From Haliotis rufescens (taxonomy: Eukaryota): a DNA stretch of 64,000 nt. Where the stretch lies: positions 7,874,001 through 7,938,000 of the forward strand of contig NW_025963780.1 of the NCBI RefSeq assembly GCF_023055435.1, written 5' to 3'. Shown here in pieces: positions 4,711 through 42,859 of this stretch (position 1 is the first letter of the stretch; the number at the start of each line of letters is the position of its first letter). The notes under the pieces are model-generated. The model saw only the letters and a program-made list of their open reading frames with translations. It was not told where the DNA came from and did not search any database. A program made the translations under genes and the position numbers.

Positions 4711-4973
4711 GACCCATGAAGATTCCGGGGTAGAATAGGTCTTCAGCAACCCATGCTTGCCGTAATAGGCCATTATGCTTGTCGTAAATGGCAACTAACG
4801 GGATCGGGTGGTCAGGCTCGCTGACTTGGTTGATGCATGCCATTGATCCCAATTGCGTGGCTCGATGCTCGTGATATCAATCACTGGGTTGTCTGGTCCA
4901 GACTCGATTATTTACAGACCGCCGTCATATAGCTGGAATATTGCTGAGTGCGGCGTTAAACAACAAACCAACC
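4711..4973 (+). mobile_element. Non-tRNA bipartite SINE (LINE-like 5' head plus LINE 3' tail)
   Basis: Begins GACCCATGAAGATTCCGGGGTAGAATAGG and ends GGAATATTGCTGAGTGCGGCGTTAAAC plus an AAC/AACC tail. 11-bp TSD TAAATACACTC at 4700-4710 and 4974-4984. Confidence 0.88.
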
Positions 4974-7064: not shown

Positions 7065-7763
7065 GGGTTATACTATAAAGGGAAATAGCACCTCGCCTAC
7101 TATTGCCTGGTGAAAACAGCACCTTGTTATTTTTTTTACCTCGGGTCTGAATATGCCCGAATACATGAAATTAAACTTGCATGGTCACTTGTAAACACAA
7201 ATAACTGAGAAATGTTCAAAAAGGTTTTTCATTAAAAACTAGCATCTACTCGCCGACTCTGATTTGGAGATGCAACTAAACTTATTGTGAAAATATAATA
7301 TGCTTTGATTTCTTTGAAGTAAAATAAATGCAATTAAACTTGCAAACACAAATAATTGTTAGATGTTAATCACCTAAAAATAGTTTACATTAGAAATTAG
7401 CCTCTGCTCAAATTTACTCATGATTCTGATTGGGAGGTGCAACTAAACTTATCATTGAAAGATCACATGCTTTGAAGTCTTAAGTAGCTTTACTCAGATT
7501 AGCTCAATGTCAAGCTGAAACTGAGTCTGGCGAAAATTACAAGAAACTGGACAACAGGTATACTATATATGTCATATTTATTTTAGTAAGTAGGAAATAA
7601 ATAGTAATTTTATAGAAATTTCATTGATATATCTTTCGGCCAGGAATCAACATGTCTCTCCAGATAACAGACAACAATTAGTAGCCCATTTTGCCAAAAC
7701 AAGGTGCTGTTTTCGTCCGAGAAATCAGTGACATTTTGCTGAGGTGCTGTTTTAGCCTCACCC
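7065..7763. mobile_element. MITE with GGG...CCC ends inserted into a bipartite SINE
   Basis: Imperfect TIRs (GGG...AAA(T/C)AGCACCTC) and an imperfect 8-bp TSD GTAAGAGA/ATAAGAGA. The SINE head (~7005-7064) resumes at 7764-7880. Internal repeats recur at ~8690-9110. Confidence 0.55.
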
Positions 7764-9654
7764 ATAAGAGATAACCTAATAGATCAGGTGATCAGGCTCG
7801 GTGACCTGGTTCATGGCATCTTACAGTGACCATCTAACAGTGTGGATTGATGTTCACAATATCAATCACTGGATTGTCTAGAATTTTGGGCCTACCTTTA
7901 GAATACAGTACCTAACTTTTCAAACAGGTCACAGTACCCTGTGGTGTAATTCGTAGTATTCTGTTGCCTGACACACTGGCAAAACAATGCCTTGTGATGT
8001 CAGGGGTCATTGGATGTGCATATATATGCTCTTTTCAGTGGTCTATCGTCTCCACACGCTATGTTGTTGCATAAGTTTTAATTATTTGGTTACTAAATAT
8101 TGTTTTAAACATTTTTATTTCACAACTTGTGAACTGGATGGGTAAACAAGCAAAAACTTATTTGAATACCGCTCCAGAATTAGAATACAATATATGACAA
8201 AAGTACAGTCAATGAATACAATTATATACATGTTCTTATTATAGAAACTACGTTGTCGGCGCTGTCAGGTCGCATTTTTAGTAGTAATAGTGTACTGCAA
8301 TATACGGCAAGGAATAGTATTATAAATTTAAGATGCTATGTAAAATCACAATACCTATTGGATAGCTGAATGTAGTCTTGTACTGATTTAAGAATTTCTA
8401 AGTTTATTTTTGACGTCCTTTCAGGATTACCTAATAGAATTGAATTTAGATCATATCCCTTAACATAATAGTACATATTCTGTCTTAAATCATTGTAATT
8501 TGGGCATATGAGAAAGAAGTGAAGTGCATCTTCAGTGTGATGGCCACAGCTACATGCAGGATTATGTTATAAATATTTTATAACAAGTGCTTGTTTATTT
8601 TCTATATGCTTTTATTTCATTTTTTACTTATTACAGTGGTTAAAATGATTATAAATATAAATTGAAACTTATAATGTGCAATAAGCGGGTTATAGCTGAA
8701 ACGACACCTTAGCAAAACGGCACTGACTGGCGAAATATTATTACTTGACGAAAATGATACCTTATTTTTTTTTTACCTTGGTAAAATAAATGAAATTAAA
8801 CTTGGATTGATAAATTGCAAAGACCAATAATTGTGAAATGTTAAAACAAGTTTACATTAGAAATTAGCCTCTACTCCAACTTATCCTATACCCGACTCAA
8901 TTTATTGTGATAACATGCTTTGAAGTAAAATATATGGAATTAAACAAACACAAATACATGTAGTTGTTAAACGTTGAAACAAGTTTACCTTCGAAATTAG
9001 TCCCCTACTCCAATTTACTCACCGACTCTGATTGGCAGACACAGCTCACTTGTTGTGAATGTATTTTTCACTTTAAAGTTTAAAGTACTTAATGTCAAGC
9101 TGAAACTGTATTTAAGAATCCTAACATGGTGCTGTCAGATTACAATTTTTCACAATGGCCTTTCGATGTGTCATTTGAACATGTTGAAAGGTTTTACAAG
9201 GGATATTTGTCAGTAATAACTGATGCTATTTCTGCCCTTACATTACAACAAATAAATCAGCCAATATGGAACTATTTTATTGATATGTGGCAACAAACAT
9301 ACTTCAGGCTGTACAGTTTACAAATTGTTTAATATCTATGTCATCTTGTTCCTCCTTATGTCTGGGCAGTTGCTCGCTACAATTTCGGAACTTCTTTACA
9401 GTTACAGACAGAAAATACCAGAACCGTTAACTACTACAAATCAAATACTGTATGGGTTTCATTGAAAGTGTCGCCACAACTGAAAATCTTCAAATACCTG
9501 TATTTGGCTATAACTTTGACTATTTTTTTTCTGTTCCTGCCTATTATCTATTCCTGCCTCAGGTAAGGATGCAGTGACTTATTTAAGTGCACACATATAT
9601 CACAGATAAACTCCTGAAGTCTATGAAAGTTATTTACAAGTTATACACATAAGG

Positions 9655-32474: not shown

Positions 32475-32753
32475 ATGCGCCAACAGTCTTGGTCAAGTAC
32501 AATAACTATGGTTTCTACCTGGGATCTGCCACAACCTTGTGGTGCTATGTGGACTCGTATCCCCTCGTTTCTCCAGGAGACATCACGTGGGTGCGTGATG
32601 GGAAATTTGTAATACCCAGCACTTCCTGTAGTGACGTCAGACCCAACTTGCGGATGTGCAAAGTGGACACAAGTACCGCTGGCACATACATGTGCCGAGC
32701 TCACCATCGATTGGCATCTGTTAATAGCGCGGACATAAGTGTAAATGTAAGAG
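32475..32753 (+). CDS. Third Ig-like domain exon
   Basis: TTTCAG/GTAAGA, phase 1-1. Translation YAPTV...LWCYVDSYP...ITWVRDG...TAGTYMCRAHH. Confidence 0.88.
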
Positions 32754-35967: not shown

Positions 35968-36460
35968 CTATACTTAGAGCCCAGAAGGAGGTTAGAGCCC
36001 TAAGCCCAGAAGGAGGTGGTTCATGGGGCCATCTGAGGTTGCTGACCTCCTAATTCTGTAAGTCTCCAATAAATTTCGTGTCAAATGTGTTGGAGTATAA
36101 CACCCATTTATCCCCGGTCTTTGCAGCTTGGAGATCCGCTGCAGCATAAGATTGTTCTTGTTGACACTTGATTGTAGCTGGGGGGAAAGAGGTACTGAAT
36201 CCCATACCATATCAATAGGCTGAATTTGAACGAAATCGGACAATTTCTTTGGTAACACAATGGTAATGGAAATAAGTCAGTGTCCGTACCTATGTACTAA
36301 TGTAGTAGTTAAGAAGTTGTCCAGACAAATTGAAATGAAGAAGTAATATAGGGCAATAAAACTGAGCAAAATAATTGCTATGTGCCCAACTTAATTGAAG
36401 TTGTCACGCGAACAAAGTTTAATTGCAATCAGTTAATTAGTTTAGAAGGAATTGTCTGGA

Positions 36461-39400
36461 GTGAGTGAGTGAGTTAAGATTTAACGTCACATCGGCAGTA
36501 TTTCAGCCATATCGTGACGAGAAGTTCATTAATAATGCATATATTTATACACTAGAAAAAGCTGTCAACGATGGACATTACAATAACTAGAATATCACAG
36601 AGTCTATTTAAAACTAGTTGAGAATATATAAAAGTATTGGTGAACAACACAATATAAAAATGGGCTAGAGATCGTCAGTAACTAAAGGGAGACACCATAC
36701 TAGGGACCATGGGGACTTACTGTGCCTTTGCTTCCTGCATGGACCCCGGCAGGATTTATATCACTTCAGTCACTGGCGACAGTGTACCATTTAAGCCAAA
36801 GATTAAAATGACGAATATTCTACGATTAAAAGCATGGCATGCAGAAAAATACTTCAAATGATGTGGGACTTACATACCCTCTTAGGGGGACAATAATTTT
36901 ACGCTACTCCAACCCCCCTCGAGGGTACATCCACTTATAATCAAGTTATTAATTAGCACTATCAATTTTTAAAACAATACAGAAACCACATCAAAATTTA
37001 TGAATAAGTTCTGTTTCATTTAAAAAACATAGTATTAAATGAGAATGAACTTTACTAAAAAGGTACTTCACTGTTTTTACACTTAAATATTTATCCCTTG
37101 TGATGAAAAAATCAATACAGTCAAGCAGGACATGCTTGACCGTGATTCTTTCATCACAAGGGACACAAAACGGAGGATCCTCACCTTTTAATATATACTC
37201 ATGTGTATATCTCGAGTGGCCAATACGACATCGTCACGTAATGACCTCTTCAAATCTGGACTGACAGCCCAAGTGGGTGTAACCAATATTTGGTTTAATT
37301 TCATGTGATTTATTAATACCCACTTGGGTGTCCCACTTCTTTTGCATCAGATCACGCATGTAAGATCTAATTATAGGTTTATAATCACTGTATGGTAAAA
37401 GTGTTGTCAAAGATTTGTTGAGTGCTGCTTTTGCAGCAGCATTAGCCATTGTGTTACCAATGATACCAACATGACTTGGTAACCAACAAAAGACGATGTC
37501 ATATTGGCCAGTAGCAAGATCATTAATTAATTCGAGAATTTGGATTAAAAGTGGATGGTTCGATGACATATTTTTAATCACTTGAAGGCACGAAGGTGAA
37601 TCAGAAAAAATAATGAATTGTTAATGTTTAGATTGATTACTGATATAGTTTAGTGCTGTAAAAATGGCGTATGCTTCTGCTGTGAATATGGAACTGTTAT
37701 CGGGTAATCGTGAAGATACTGTTCTGGATCCAATGACAGTGGCACTAGCAACTGCGCCACCATCCTTGGATCCATCTGTTAATATAGATGTATAAGTGTA
37801 GTAAGTGTTTCTTTATTGATGCTATTCTTGTTGGCAAATTAATAGTTTTAAATAGACTCAAGTTGAGTAGGGGCTATATAGAGGATGGAGCCATAATCAA
37901 GTTTTGTACGGATCAGTGATCTATACAAATGTAAGTGGGTTGTTAGAAACTACTTTCAATAAATCGAGTGCCTTCAGACATTTGGCTTTTAGGTATTTAG
38001 TATGTGGGAGGAAAGTTAAATGGTTATAAAAAAAGTCCCAAGAACTTGGCCTCCTTCACATCTTTGATAGGGGTGCTATTTAGAAAAAGTTCAGGGTCCT
38101 TGTGCGGTTATATATATTTTCTGCAGAAATGTATACAGTTAGTTTTTGATTTGGAACATTTAAACCCGTTCTCTAGACACCACTTGTGAATTTTATTGAG
38201 ACATAATTGTAATTGCCTTTCTATTGTGTGCATATTTTTACAACGACAAGATATATTAAAATTATCCACAAAAAGTGATCCATCAACTGAATCATTTAAA
38301 ACTTTCGATAAACTATTGATATTAATGCTGAATAATGTGACAGACAAAATACTGCCCTGTTGGACGCCCTGATCCTGATTATAATAATCAGACAGGGTAG
38401 TACCCACGCGGACTTGAAATTGTCTGTCTGTTAAAAAGTTGGATATAAACTGAGGCAAACGACTTGGCAATCCAAAGTTATGTAAATCTTTTAAAATACC
38501 ATTTTACCATGTAGTGTCATATGCTTTTTCGAGATCGAAAAAGATAGACACTGCATGTTGTTTGTTTATTATGGCATTTTTTACAAATGATTCTAAACGT
38601 ACTAAATGATCGATCGTACTTCTGTTTTTACGGAAACCACATTGTATATTTGTAATGAGATTATCGGTACCAAACAAGTCGATTATTTATCATGCGTTCC
38701 ATGGTTTTGCAAACGCAGCTAGTCAATGAAATTGGTCGATAATTTGATGGATCTGTGTGATCACGTCCTTGTTTAGGTATTGGAACAACAATGGCATCAC
38801 GCCAAGACGGTGGAAATAGTCCTGACGTCCAAATTTCATGAAAAATATTTAACAGTGATTGTATACATGATTCTGGTAAGTGCTTCAGGAGTTGATAATG
38901 TATGTTATCATTTCCAAGAGCGTATTGTGAGATTGTCCGAGGGCAGTATGTAGTTCATGAATAGAAAATATTTCATTGTAATCTTCCCCATTATCTGAAT
39001 TAAAACTAATAGGTTTCTTTTCCTGCTGTTTTTGGTATTTTTGAAATTGAGGCACATAATTGGAGGAGGAAGAATGTTTGGCCAAAGTATCACCCAGTTT
39101 ATTTGCAATATCAGATTTATCAATTAACAACTCATTCCCATTCTTAAGATGGTGAATGCCAGATTTAGGTCCCTTACCTTTGATTTTCTTGACCATGTTC
39201 CATACCTTGGACATGGGCGTAGGTGAATTGATTTTTGAAACGTAAGCTTGCCAAGACTTGCGTTTATTTTGTTTAAACGTACACCGTGCTTTAGCATTTG
39301 CGATTTTGAATTTATTTTTATGTACCATAGGATGGCGACGGAAAAAATGTTTAGCTTTCTTCCGTGCCTTGCTAGCTTGTTTGCAAGTATCATTAAACCA

Positions 39401-41870
39401 TGGTTTACGGATGTGTGGATTTGCAGAGGACTTGGGAATGCATTCATCAGCTTTTTTGTTAAGTTCATCAGAAAACAGTTTTATTGAATCAGGAACATCA
39501 ACAAAACGATCAGGATTTAATTAGCTCATACAAAGTAACTCGAACAAAGACCAGTTAGCTTTAGTGAAATTCCATCTTGATGATGGGGGAACATCGGATG
39601 GAGTTATTGTTTGAAGAAAAGTCGGAAAATGGTCACCTCCACACAGGTTGTCGTTGACTGACCATTCGAATTCATTTAGAAGCTGAGAGTTGGTAAGTGA
39701 TAGATCTAGAGATGAATAGGTGCCTGTGCCTGGATGTAATAGGTTTTAGAGTTATCATTAAAAATGCATAGAGCGTTGTCAGAAATGAAATCTTCCAATG
39801 TCTTCCCTTTACGGTTTGAATCAGCACTAACCCAAAGTGGATTATGTCCATTTAAATCGCCCATAATGACACAGGGCTTGGGAAGATGGTCATAGAGCGC
39901 CTTAAGATCTGTCTGTTGAAGAGTAGAAGATGGCGTAACATAAAATGAACATAATGTCAATACAATGTTTAGAGTTAATTCGTACAGCAACAGCTTGAAG
40001 TGGCGTATCTAGTAGAACAGGGCTATGTATAACATCCTGCCTCACCAATACTGAAGATCCCCCAGGGGCTCTGAGTCCTGGAGGGGAGAAGTGGTTATAT
40101 GCATTATATTGTTTTATCTGGATTTGGTCAGTATCTTTATGATAAGTTTCCTGTAAACAAAAAGCCGATGGTTTAAAATCCTGGATTAATAATTGCAAAT
40201 CATTGAAATTGTTCCTTAGTCCTCTGCAATTTCATTGGATAATAGCAGAAGAACAACTCATGGTGGCTCAACTGGAGATCGAGAGCGGGAAGGAGGTCCA
40301 TTCGCTTGATCTGGGAGCGAGGGACTTACCTCCATTTCCAGAGGTCCAAAAGTAATATGTACGTCTACAGGGGTTGTAGTAGGAGAAGGCATCTCCAAGA
40401 TCCCTGGCCCTTCTCCTCTGCCTTTTTTTGTTTGTTAGACAAGTTGGCTTCACCTTGTAAATCTCCAATGCCCTTGATAGATTCTGATTCAAATGGTTGA
40501 GTTGCTGTAGGTTCAGATAAAGGATTCTCTGTTTGGGAAGCAGATGTTACCAGCTAGGGGCTATTTTGAGATATCTGGGTAGAGTCGTCAAGTGCAATCT
40601 GAGTATCCTTAACCCAAGAGATAGCAGTTTGAGTGCAGGCTGTGGATACTTTGACAGCTGGAGTTGGGGCTGACACAGCAGCTGAAAATGTTTTGGTGAA
40701 AGTTGCTTGTGATGGAAGAAATATTTTTTGGCTTCTGTATATGAAATATTGTTGGTACATTTGATTTTTAGTATTTTTGATTCACGATCAAAGGCAGTGT
40801 TGACAATACTGTCAGCTTGTGTTATTCTTATGAAGCGCTTAACTGAGGTAACACCTTGGTTGGACAATTCATGCGCTATTTCATATTTCATCCTCTGTCT
40901 GCGAGACAGCGAGCACGATCTCGGACAATTCCTTTACAGGAATTAAGCGATTTGCGTGCAGAAACAACAACCTTTGTGTTAACAAATTACTGGATACTCA
41001 GCAGATTAACAGATTGTTGCTTCCGATCACACTCAACAAGGATTGAACCAGAACGAAGACGTGTCATGTTCTTTACTTCCCCACACATACTTTGTATTCC
41101 CTTTGAGATTGCAAAAGGGTTCAGTTTTAGGGGATCGCTACAGCGGCTGACATGACAATGAACCTTGGCCATGAGTCAGGGACATCTTCATCTGTGAAGG
41201 GACATCTTCATCAGATGAAAGAGAATCTAAATGCCTGCGTTTGTTTGTTTTAGATGAACCAGAGTGAGGATTGAAAGCCATGTTGTAAGAAAATATTTCA
41301 GCACCCCTGCCATCGAGTGTCAACAAGGACAGTGCCAGAGTGGAAACCAGTCTGGAACACCAGGGTTACAGGGGTGTTATACTCCAGAAATAAAGACACG
41401 AAAAGCTGTTGTTAATAAAAGGACAAATGTCAGGCTTGTTCGACCCATGGCCTTTTCCTATAAAAACACAGAATTCAGCAGTCCGTATCACCAGATTGGC
41501 CCATGAGCCACCGCCTTCTGGCAAAAGACTCATTAATAACATTATCATATTTCATGATAAACCATTTATTTCCTTTGATATTTCTAAATATAAGTTTTCC
41601 ATGCACAGGGCATGGCGTGACAAGCCGATTGGTAGATTCGGGCCAATTCTACCACTAGGCTAGGTGAAGTAAGTGTCGAAGTGGTGTGTTGGGCAAAAGG
41701 AACACCTGTTCCGGGATCCAGTGCCCTCAAGCACCAGAATCCCGTCCTCCACCGACACAGGGGTCGGTCGCCTTTTACGACCAGCAATGGGGTGCTGAGG
41801 ACACATTCTACTAAGAACTATTAGCGTTACCCAGCACTCACCACGTGGAGGCTGCTCTTCACGAGTGCCA
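36461..41870 (-). mobile_element. End-to-end I-group (Nimb-like) LINE with RNase H, inactivated
   Basis: 11-bp TSD AATTGTCTGGA at 36450-36460 and 41871-41881; (ACTC)n tail. ORF1 runs from ~41281 (LNPFAISKGIQ...RLRSGSILVEC). ORF2 spans ~40261-36991 with APE endonuclease (FCLQET, MGDLNGHNPLW), RT (QGSILS, LFVDNF) and RNase H (TDGSK, FCWLPSHVGIIGN). Contains stops, frameshifts and internal deletions. Confidence 0.95.
41813..41869 (-). ncRNA. HDV-like self-cleaving ribozyme (predicted) at the LINE 5' end
   Basis: Minus strand: GGCACTC GTG AAGAGCA GCC TCCACGT GGT GAGTGCT GG GTAAC G C TAA TAGTTCTT = P1, J1/2, P2, P3, L3, P3', P1', P1.1, minimal P4, J4/2, P2'. Confidence 0.85.
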
Positions 41871-42859
41871 AATTGTCTGGAAAGAATGTTCTACTGACAG
41901 ACCGCTGATTCAATTATACCTTCTACCTTCGTTGCTGGGGAACAATGAACTAATAATCAAATGAAATGACATTCACAAGGGTTTTCAAAAGGACTTCATA
42001 AATATATATTAACTGATTTAGATGTTTGAGACCTGTATATTACAAACTTCCGACTGTGAGACCATCTTGGATTTCTGAATGAGGTTATATTACTGGACCT
42101 TGTGCTCATCATCCACACCTAGTTTCATCAGGAGCACTTATTAGTATGGGAAAATAGTCTAAAATAAGGTATATTATCTAAATTTCGACCAAGCAGAGGA
42201 CTCCACTCCGTTGCTATTGTAATAAAATGTGCTTTATGTTAAAAAAATATATCTAAGTATCTCTTATCGAAATGGAACAGCTAAATGTCGACCAATCAGA
42301 TGTCTCGATTCGTTGCCATGATGGTAAGTAAACCTGTTCGGTCGAGTCCTAAAATACATTGTACCTAAACACCAAATTTGAACGAAATGTCTGAATATCG
42401 ATCAATCAGCTCTGCACATGCCCCTCTCCGTTGTCATGGAAGCAAGACAGTAACGTAAATAAAGGCATATTATGCATATTGTATAATATCCCCAGATACC
42501 CCTTTGTAACAAGATTGAACAAATTCCGCTAAATGACATGTCAGTAATGACCACTTAAAGAAAGCCTGTAAATAACGACCAGGTGCAGTGCACTTACACA
42601 AATTCCATTGCTCTACTATATGGTGTTCCTGAGAAAACGCGATAAATTTAAGGAAGAATACTTTCTATTACGAATAATTATAAGAAAGCGAGCAAAAACA
42701 ACGAAAAACGTGAAAAAAGCAAAAAGTTCCCTTTATTTCCAATCAAACTTGGTTTATAAGAATCTTTTACAATAAGGGTCGATATGTATACGATATCAAC
42801 CCTTAATGTAAACTATTTTTTTTACATAAAGGTTTGCGGGTTGTTATTCTTAATTTAAA

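Follow-up and report, generated by a model that had tools for sequence, protein, structure and literature searches.

The subject of this analysis is the 5' end of a long interspersed nuclear element (LINE) that lies on the minus strand of a 64,000-nt stretch of the Haliotis rufescens genome (contig NW_025963780.1, positions 7,874,001 to 7,938,000; the whole stretch is called the window below). The first 58 nt of this LINE probably constitute a theta-type self-cleaving ribozyme of the hepatitis delta virus (HDV) kind, devoid of a P4 helix, whose cut would set the element's 5' end at its first nucleotide, G1. We assign a probability of about 0.85 to this reading, which was reached from sequence comparison. 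Two parts of it are our inference, namely self-cleavage by the LINE sequence and the claim that the 5' end is set in vivo by this cleavage and not by the start of transcription.

Fold and detection of the putative ribozyme

In the window, positions 41869-41812 of the minus strand read GGCACUC-GU-GAAGAGC-A-GCC-UCCACGU-GGU-GAGUGCU-GG-GUAAC-GCUAAUA-GUUCUU-A. This segment can be drawn as an HDV-like nested double pseudoknot, in the canonical order P1/P2/P3/P1.1, which spans 58 nt without a P4 helix. An earlier note on this DNA had proposed an HDV-like fold on the minus strand, and the proposal holds: no HDV element is missing, the spacing is right, and three Rfam models match. The parts are as follows (P, paired; L, loop; J, joining segment; MAG, metagenome-assembled genome).

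41812-41869, minus strand: putative minimal P4-less HDV-like ribozyme, recognised from the sequence, from RF02682, from model R1 and from our own descriptor; cleavage is predicted directly 5' of G41869
41863-41869, minus strand: 5' strand of P1, GGCACUC, the first pair being a G1·U wobble; 7/7 pairs with 41833-41839, and P1 covaries across the class
41833-41839, minus strand: 3' strand of P1, GAGUGCU, from its pairing with the 5' strand and from class covariation
41854-41860, minus strand: 5' strand of P2, GAAGAGC, with G41860 unpaired in the window copy
41813-41818, minus strand: 3' strand of P2, GUUCUU, from its pairing with AAGAGC (41859-41854) and from the descriptor
41840-41852, minus strand: P3, GCC (41852-41850) with GGU (41842-41840), around L3 UCCACGU; the same motif occurs in theta ribozymes
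41819-41832, minus strand: GG of P1.1, the P4 remnant GUAAC and J4/2 GCUAAUA; GGGUAAYGCUAA is common to 52 phage/MAG contigs

The 5' strands of P1 and P2 are joined by GU (J1/2), and P1.1 is formed by C41848 and C41847 of L3 with G41832 and G41831. Both the conserved L3 of HDV (UCCNCGY) and the J4/2 cytosine are present, as UCCACGU and GCUAAUA respectively; the candidate catalytic C is 41824, and the Rfam alignment places GCUAA on the HDV J4/2. P2 comprises 6 bp in the window (AAGAGC/GUUCUU, including one G·U), with G41860 and A41812 mismatched, whereas the majority of the family has a perfect 7-bp helix, GAAGAGC/GCUCUUC. The bulge that the earlier note had placed in P2 is not needed once J4/2 is read as GCUAAUA.

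RF02682 (HDV-F-prausnitzii) aligned end to end at 41811-41869 on the minus strand, with 27.8 bits and an E value of 0.13, and RF00094 and RF01787 matched the same place. Model R1, which was built only from LINE copies, gave the window ribozyme 85.7 bits. A search with our own HDV-topology descriptor, a kind of search that the earlier note had called for, found the ribozyme as the sole site on either strand of the 64-kb window, against 0-1 sites in shuffled controls. The plain minimum free energy (MFE) z-score of +0.78 was not significant, as expected of ViennaRNA, which does not model pseudoknots. A second R1 match in the window (32597-32677, minus strand, 19.1 bits, E 0.003) shows GGGUA and a pairing like that of P1, but P3 and L3 are absent and it was rejected as a chance match.

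Family 5' ends and the core in common with phage ribozymes

The genome contains 913 occurrences of the family core pattern CCTCCNCGTGGTGAGTGCTGGGTANNGCTAAT and none of its reversed control. When positions 41950-41500 of the minus strand were compared with the genome by BLAST, the matches mostly started at query position 81-82, which is G1. Among 75 distinct sampled insertions, 72 start at G1 with a complete P1 strand at the junction and unrelated DNA upstream; the mean pairwise identity of the sampled insertions, 0.83 downstream of the ribozyme, is 0.27 across the 40 nt that precede it. Each sampled copy runs on into the 5' untranslated region (UTR), open reading frame (ORF) 1 and ORF2 of the LINE, and is bounded by a target-site duplication (TSD) in animal-type DNA. 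In the three other copies with both ends (L043, L044 and L045) the TSD adjoins G1 with no extra nucleotide, and in the window with one.

Given these 5' ends at G1 and the adjacent TSDs, the template RNA of the LINE family starts at G1, and the predicted cut falls right before the nucleotide with which full-length copies begin. The earlier note had taken G1 for the exact 5' end, 1 nt away from an 11-bp TSD; both claims were borne out, the TSD being TCCAGACAATT at 41881-41871 and 36460-36450. Copies routinely extending upstream of G1, which it had named as counter-evidence, were not observed, as the same 72 of 75 insertions indicate. At position -1 of the 72 insertions, A is found in 33 and G in 16, so that G is not enriched.

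Moreover, the ribozyme is the best conserved segment in the first 1 kb of subfamilies that differ by 20-35% across this region (identity 0.93, compared with 0.64-0.69 beyond nt 320), in a profile whose loci were partly picked by ribozyme score. Variants carried by many copies are found at the N of L3, in the P4 loop (AC, GC, AU) and at the last base of J4/2, or are changes from G-C to G·U, and all of them are compatible with the fold. When R1 was run on the own genome, the matches listed included near-identical copies of the family. A CCCCGUGUGGAACCGGGG hairpin directly follows the ribozyme in most copies and has been lost from the window copy.

The same core was found outside the animal genome. 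A pattern without P1, ACCTCCNCGTGGTNNNNNNTGGGTANNGCTAA, matched on 46 IMG/VR phage contigs and 6 bacterial MAG contigs; by our own rough estimate, ~0.02 matches would be expected by chance in genome_contigs. The core ACC-UCCNCGU-GGU, P1', GG-GUAAY-GCUAA is identical, spacing included, in the LINE and in these 52 contigs. In the 42 distinct phage/MAG sequences, P1 is paired at 7/7 positions in 40, P2 pairs in 41 with 5-8 bp in register, and the whole ribozyme measures 52-61 nt. Of the 10 loci checked, 9 have G1 next to the 3' end of a tRNA, with suppressor-type tRNAs close by, and it is because of this position that we identify the phage/MAG matches as theta ribozymes, that is, minimal HDV-like ribozymes. 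R1, despite having been built from LINE copies, detected the phage ribozymes at 20-61 bits. In a joint alignment of LINE and phage sequences, which was fitted to the model, P1 and P3 are 99.4% paired, compared with 31-50% with slid partners, and 164 cells are changed on both sides; across the class, P3 occurs in A-U, G-C and G·U forms. In the joint set, covariation is seen in P1, P2 and P3.

Theta ribozymes undergo Mg2+-dependent self-scission in vitro, which is abolished by a C-to-U mutation (Kienbeck et al. 2024, PMC10879173), and theta and minimal drz sequences are nearly 99% in Caudoviricetes (PMC10879173). Minimal P4-less HDV-like ribozymes of the drz-Mtgn type go back to Riccitelli et al. 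2014, as cited in PMC10879173. In the LINE, G1 follows random target DNA and not, as in the phage, the 3' end of a tRNA. The LINE ribozyme would therefore belong to the minimal drz class but lie outside its tRNA-associated theta subgroup.

A single phage/MAG contig can carry several theta-type ribozymes that differ in P1 and P2 (four sites each on L167 and L180), and some of these have the compensatory P3 form GCC/GGC.

The LINE family and its relatives

The window copy is an old insertion with dead coding regions and a ribozyme that has stayed nearly intact. Its features are the following.

36461-41869, minus strand: degraded full-length LINE of ~5.4 kb, recognised from ORF fragments, with many stops and frameshifts; the 5' part is homologous to young copies
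41871-41881, minus strand: 5' TSD, TCCAGACAATT, 11 bp, read from the sequence
36450-36460, minus strand: 3' TSD, TCCAGACAATT, 11 bp, read from the sequence
41870, minus strand: one extra T, probably untemplated, separates the TSD from G1; no extra nucleotide is present in three other full-length copies
36461-36474, minus strand: (ACTC)n 3' tail of the LINE, as on other copies
39706-40198, minus strand: remnants of the apurinic/apyrimidinic endonuclease (APE), Pfam PF14529 at 3.2e-13, plus PF03372
38108-38677, minus strand: remnants of the reverse transcriptase (RT), Pfam PF00078 at 3.2e-10 and 1.8e-5

Elsewhere in the window (4711-4810, plus strand), the head of an element resembling a short interspersed nuclear element (SINE) is similar to the LINE 5' end minus the ribozyme core (ATGAAGA-TTCCGGGGTAGAATAGG...).

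In an intact copy at L043, the ribozyme and a 480-nt 5' UTR precede ORF1 (471 aa) and ORF2 (1229 aa). ORF1 gave no Pfam match; ORF2 carries APE (PF03372/PF14529), RT (RVT_1, PF00078) and RNase H (PF00075) domains. Many of the best 150 RT matches lie within open frames of ORF2 length, 1229-1235 aa. This ORF2 with APE, RT and RNase H, together with a separate ORF1, fits the I group, and it is the I-group part of the 'Nimb/I-group' assignment in the earlier note that stands. The names attached to the LINE proteins in databases, such as 'jockey' and 'X-element', are automatic labels only, and the ESM Atlas yielded no clade. The LINE family is abundant and apparently still active.

New copies often lie within, or a few bases past, the (ACTC)n tail of another copy, which gives head-to-tail pairs (7700-7790 on the minus strand of L043, and L060, L081, L028 and L070). 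These pairs suggest that target priming makes use of the tail repeat.

Among the proteins deposited for bacterial MAGs are homologues of ORF2 with APE and RT, most of which have RNase H as well (P0004, P0046, P0071, P0077, P0112 and P0115); the MAGs include Candidatus Thiodiazotropha, a Lucinoma symbiont, Desulfocapsa and Chloroflexota. These homologues most likely stem from contigs of the host animals that were mis-binned.

Within the 5' UTR (L043, 8166-8260, minus strand; about nt 125-200 of the LINE 5' UTR), there is a conserved stem-loop, GCAACCU-GUUUGCCGU-GGGUUGC, with GUGUCGGCGGAGG...UCUGGUA.UUGAG after it. The window copy has lost part of it near 41715-41775 on the minus strand. At the nucleotide level it is common to LINE relatives in metagenomes with an ORF2 only ~50% identical, with compensatory changes in 4 of the 7 stem pairs and a nearly invariant loop.

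In one related metagenome LINE (L103, contig Ga0209364_1001446, 1009-1090, plus strand), an HDV-like arrangement with a full P4 can be seen by eye: P2 CAGCCUGUU/AACAGGCUG, P3 ACC/GGU, L3 UCCACGAA and J4/2 GCUGA, with no upstream 5' strand of P1. This arrangement was undetected by Rfam and by our own descriptor, and the LINE may be a 5'-truncated copy.

Proposed mechanism, alternatives and meaning

We propose that the LINE is transcribed, including within longer read-through transcripts, and that the 5' segment of its RNA would fold co-transcriptionally as the nested double pseudoknot. Catalysis of the cut directly 5' of G1 would fall to the J4/2 cytosine (C41824 in the window), and the cut would free the LINE RNA, with G1 as its first base, from any upstream transcript; full-length reverse-transcribed copies would hence begin at G1, beside the TSD. 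Such 5' processing by a ribozyme is known for R2, R4/Dong, RTE and L1Tc (PMC3774820; PMC3185411).

Several observations weigh against this proposal. The Rfam scores stay under the gathering thresholds (27.8 and 28.5 against 44 for RF02682, 23.9 against 50 for RF00094), a shortfall that stems largely from the missing P4; P2 is outside the Rfam model. A genome search for other P1 sequences, with the P1' of the family excluded, yielded nothing but 10 mutated family copies and thus no covariation within the genome; there is only one P1/P2 sequence in it, and the covariation stems from the phage members. As for the alignment of family copies that the earlier note had suggested, the sampled insertions showed the pile-up of 5' ends at G1, and P1/P2 covariation was lacking within the LINE family and appeared only with the phage set. 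The two limits already given, namely that the joint alignment was fitted to the model and that ribozyme score had a part in the choice of loci for the conservation profile, count on the same side.

The related LINEs in metagenomes count there as well. Among 80 metagenome loci with ORF2 relatives of 37-75% identity, R1 detected the ribozyme in none, nor did either of two versions of the descriptor, and the 21 related loci that were scanned with Rfam had no HDV match. At least 7 of these loci do contain the homologous 5' UTR region in which a ribozyme would be expected, and hence the head is not universal among ORF2 relatives. It would rather be a lineage-specific or exchangeable module, in keeping with the published finding that Nimb-17_LMi, I-3_DR, RTE-9_CPB and mollusc LP-SINEs have only their first 68-70 bp in common (PMC4758252).

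The 58-nt head could also be an internal promoter or initiator, so that a start at G1 alone sets the 5' ends and the HDV-like fold is unused or non-cleaving. A start site at G1 would yield the same genomic junctions, which also speaks against our proposal; the conserved 68-70 bp head of Nimb LINEs and of mollusc 'LP-SINEs' was read as a LINE promoter (PMC4758252), and in L1Tc one 5' segment, Pr77, is both promoter and ribozyme (PMC3383444). A promoter, however, needs no core identical to that of catalytically validated theta ribozymes, with a 7-bp P1 and a P2 in exact register. Moreover, the changes kept among subfamilies preserve the pairing, and position -1 (A 33/72, G 16/72) lacks the excess of G that reverse transcription of a cap might give. 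We therefore consider a promoter without cleavage unlikely, even if a start site at G1, alone or jointly with a ribozyme as in L1Tc Pr77, is compatible with the DNA data.

A little less probable still is a ribozyme that is active without defining the 5' end, which would trim a minority of read-through transcripts or have another role, such as translation of uncapped RNA, while most templates initiate at G1. The HDV-like ribozymes of R2 reportedly promote translation initiation, as Ruminski is said to have found in 2011, and initiation and cleavage, as routes to G1, look the same in genomic data. Against this stands the coincidence of the cleavage site with the first base of the element, of which 5' processing is the simplest reading, as in R2, RTE, R4 and L1Tc (PMC3774820).

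A chance resemblance, or contamination of the assembly with phage or bacterial DNA, is hardly credible. The MFE z-score and the sub-threshold Rfam scores might favour chance, but the 913 core copies, set against none for the reversed control, speak against both; chance is further opposed by the 0-1 descriptor matches in shuffled sequence, and contamination by the sampled copies continuing, between their TSDs in animal-type DNA, into the rest of the LINE. This explanation is effectively refuted already.

The self-cleaving head that we favour resembles theta and minimal drz ribozymes in its core and spacing, in a 7-nt P1' ending in U, in the lack of P4, in a P1 of 7 bp that starts from G·U, and in P2 (5-8 bp in the class) and total length (52-61 nt). 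The context differs: the LINE ribozyme heads its element and would release the RNA downstream, whereas in the phage G1 abuts a tRNA, which lies upstream and is the part set free. The ribozymes of R2, R4/Dong, RTE, Baggins and L1Tc/ingi carry a P4 helix. They likewise sit at the extreme 5' end of their elements, with the cut at the first nucleotide (PMC3774820, PMC3185411, PMC4035085), and the role proposed for them is the one proposed here, release from a co-transcript. L1TcRz covers the first 77 nt (PMC3185411), compared with 58 nt and no P4 in the present case. The present LINE stands apart from other ribozyme-headed LINEs by its APE, RT and RNase H domains, its (ACTC)n tail and its ~900 dispersed copies. 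To our knowledge, no natural LINE-borne HDV-like ribozyme is smaller than this one of 58 nt.

A further likeness is with the 'LP' head described by Matetovici et al. 2016 (PMC4758252), a conserved 5' domain of 68-70 bp in Nimb-17_LMi, I-3_DR, RTE-9_CPB and the LP-SINEs of gastropods and bivalves. As with the LINE ribozyme, a short conserved module lies at the extreme 5' end of I-group/Nimb LINEs and is found in molluscs; the rest of the ~400-nt 5' UTR of LP-headed LINEs is not conserved. The authors proposed a promoter and not a ribozyme (PMC4758252), and we liken the two by description only. It is conceivable, if rather doubtful, that the theta-type ribozyme is the LP head of the locust and zebrafish Nimb LINEs, the turtle RTE and the LP-SINEs, and thus a portable 58-nt cassette swapped across LINE clades, SINEs and animal phyla. 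If true, this would explain the conservation of only the first ~70 nt among otherwise unrelated elements.

Neither ribozymes of the HDV kind at the 5' ends of LINEs nor minimal drz ribozymes without P4 are new. In the literature searched, we found no report of HDV-like ribozymes in molluscs or in Nimb elements. The earlier note had supposed that a nearly P4-less ribozyme might be undescribed; this does not hold for the class, since minimal drz and theta ribozymes are known (PMC10879173), but it does for an animal LINE, on which we did not find one described. What is new is the theta-type core on a high-copy animal LINE, a combination absent from the literature searched.

The core pattern or R1 can be used as a marker of full-length 5' ends for the annotation of this LINE group. 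Moreover, the minimal P4-less class, which has been reported almost exclusively as phage-borne, would be extended to eukaryotic retrotransposons, and the LINE ribozyme might share ancestry with the tRNA-processing ribozymes of phages rather than have arisen by convergence. The class would thereby gain a second biological role, the formation of LINE 5' ends, beside the processing of tRNA 3' ends.

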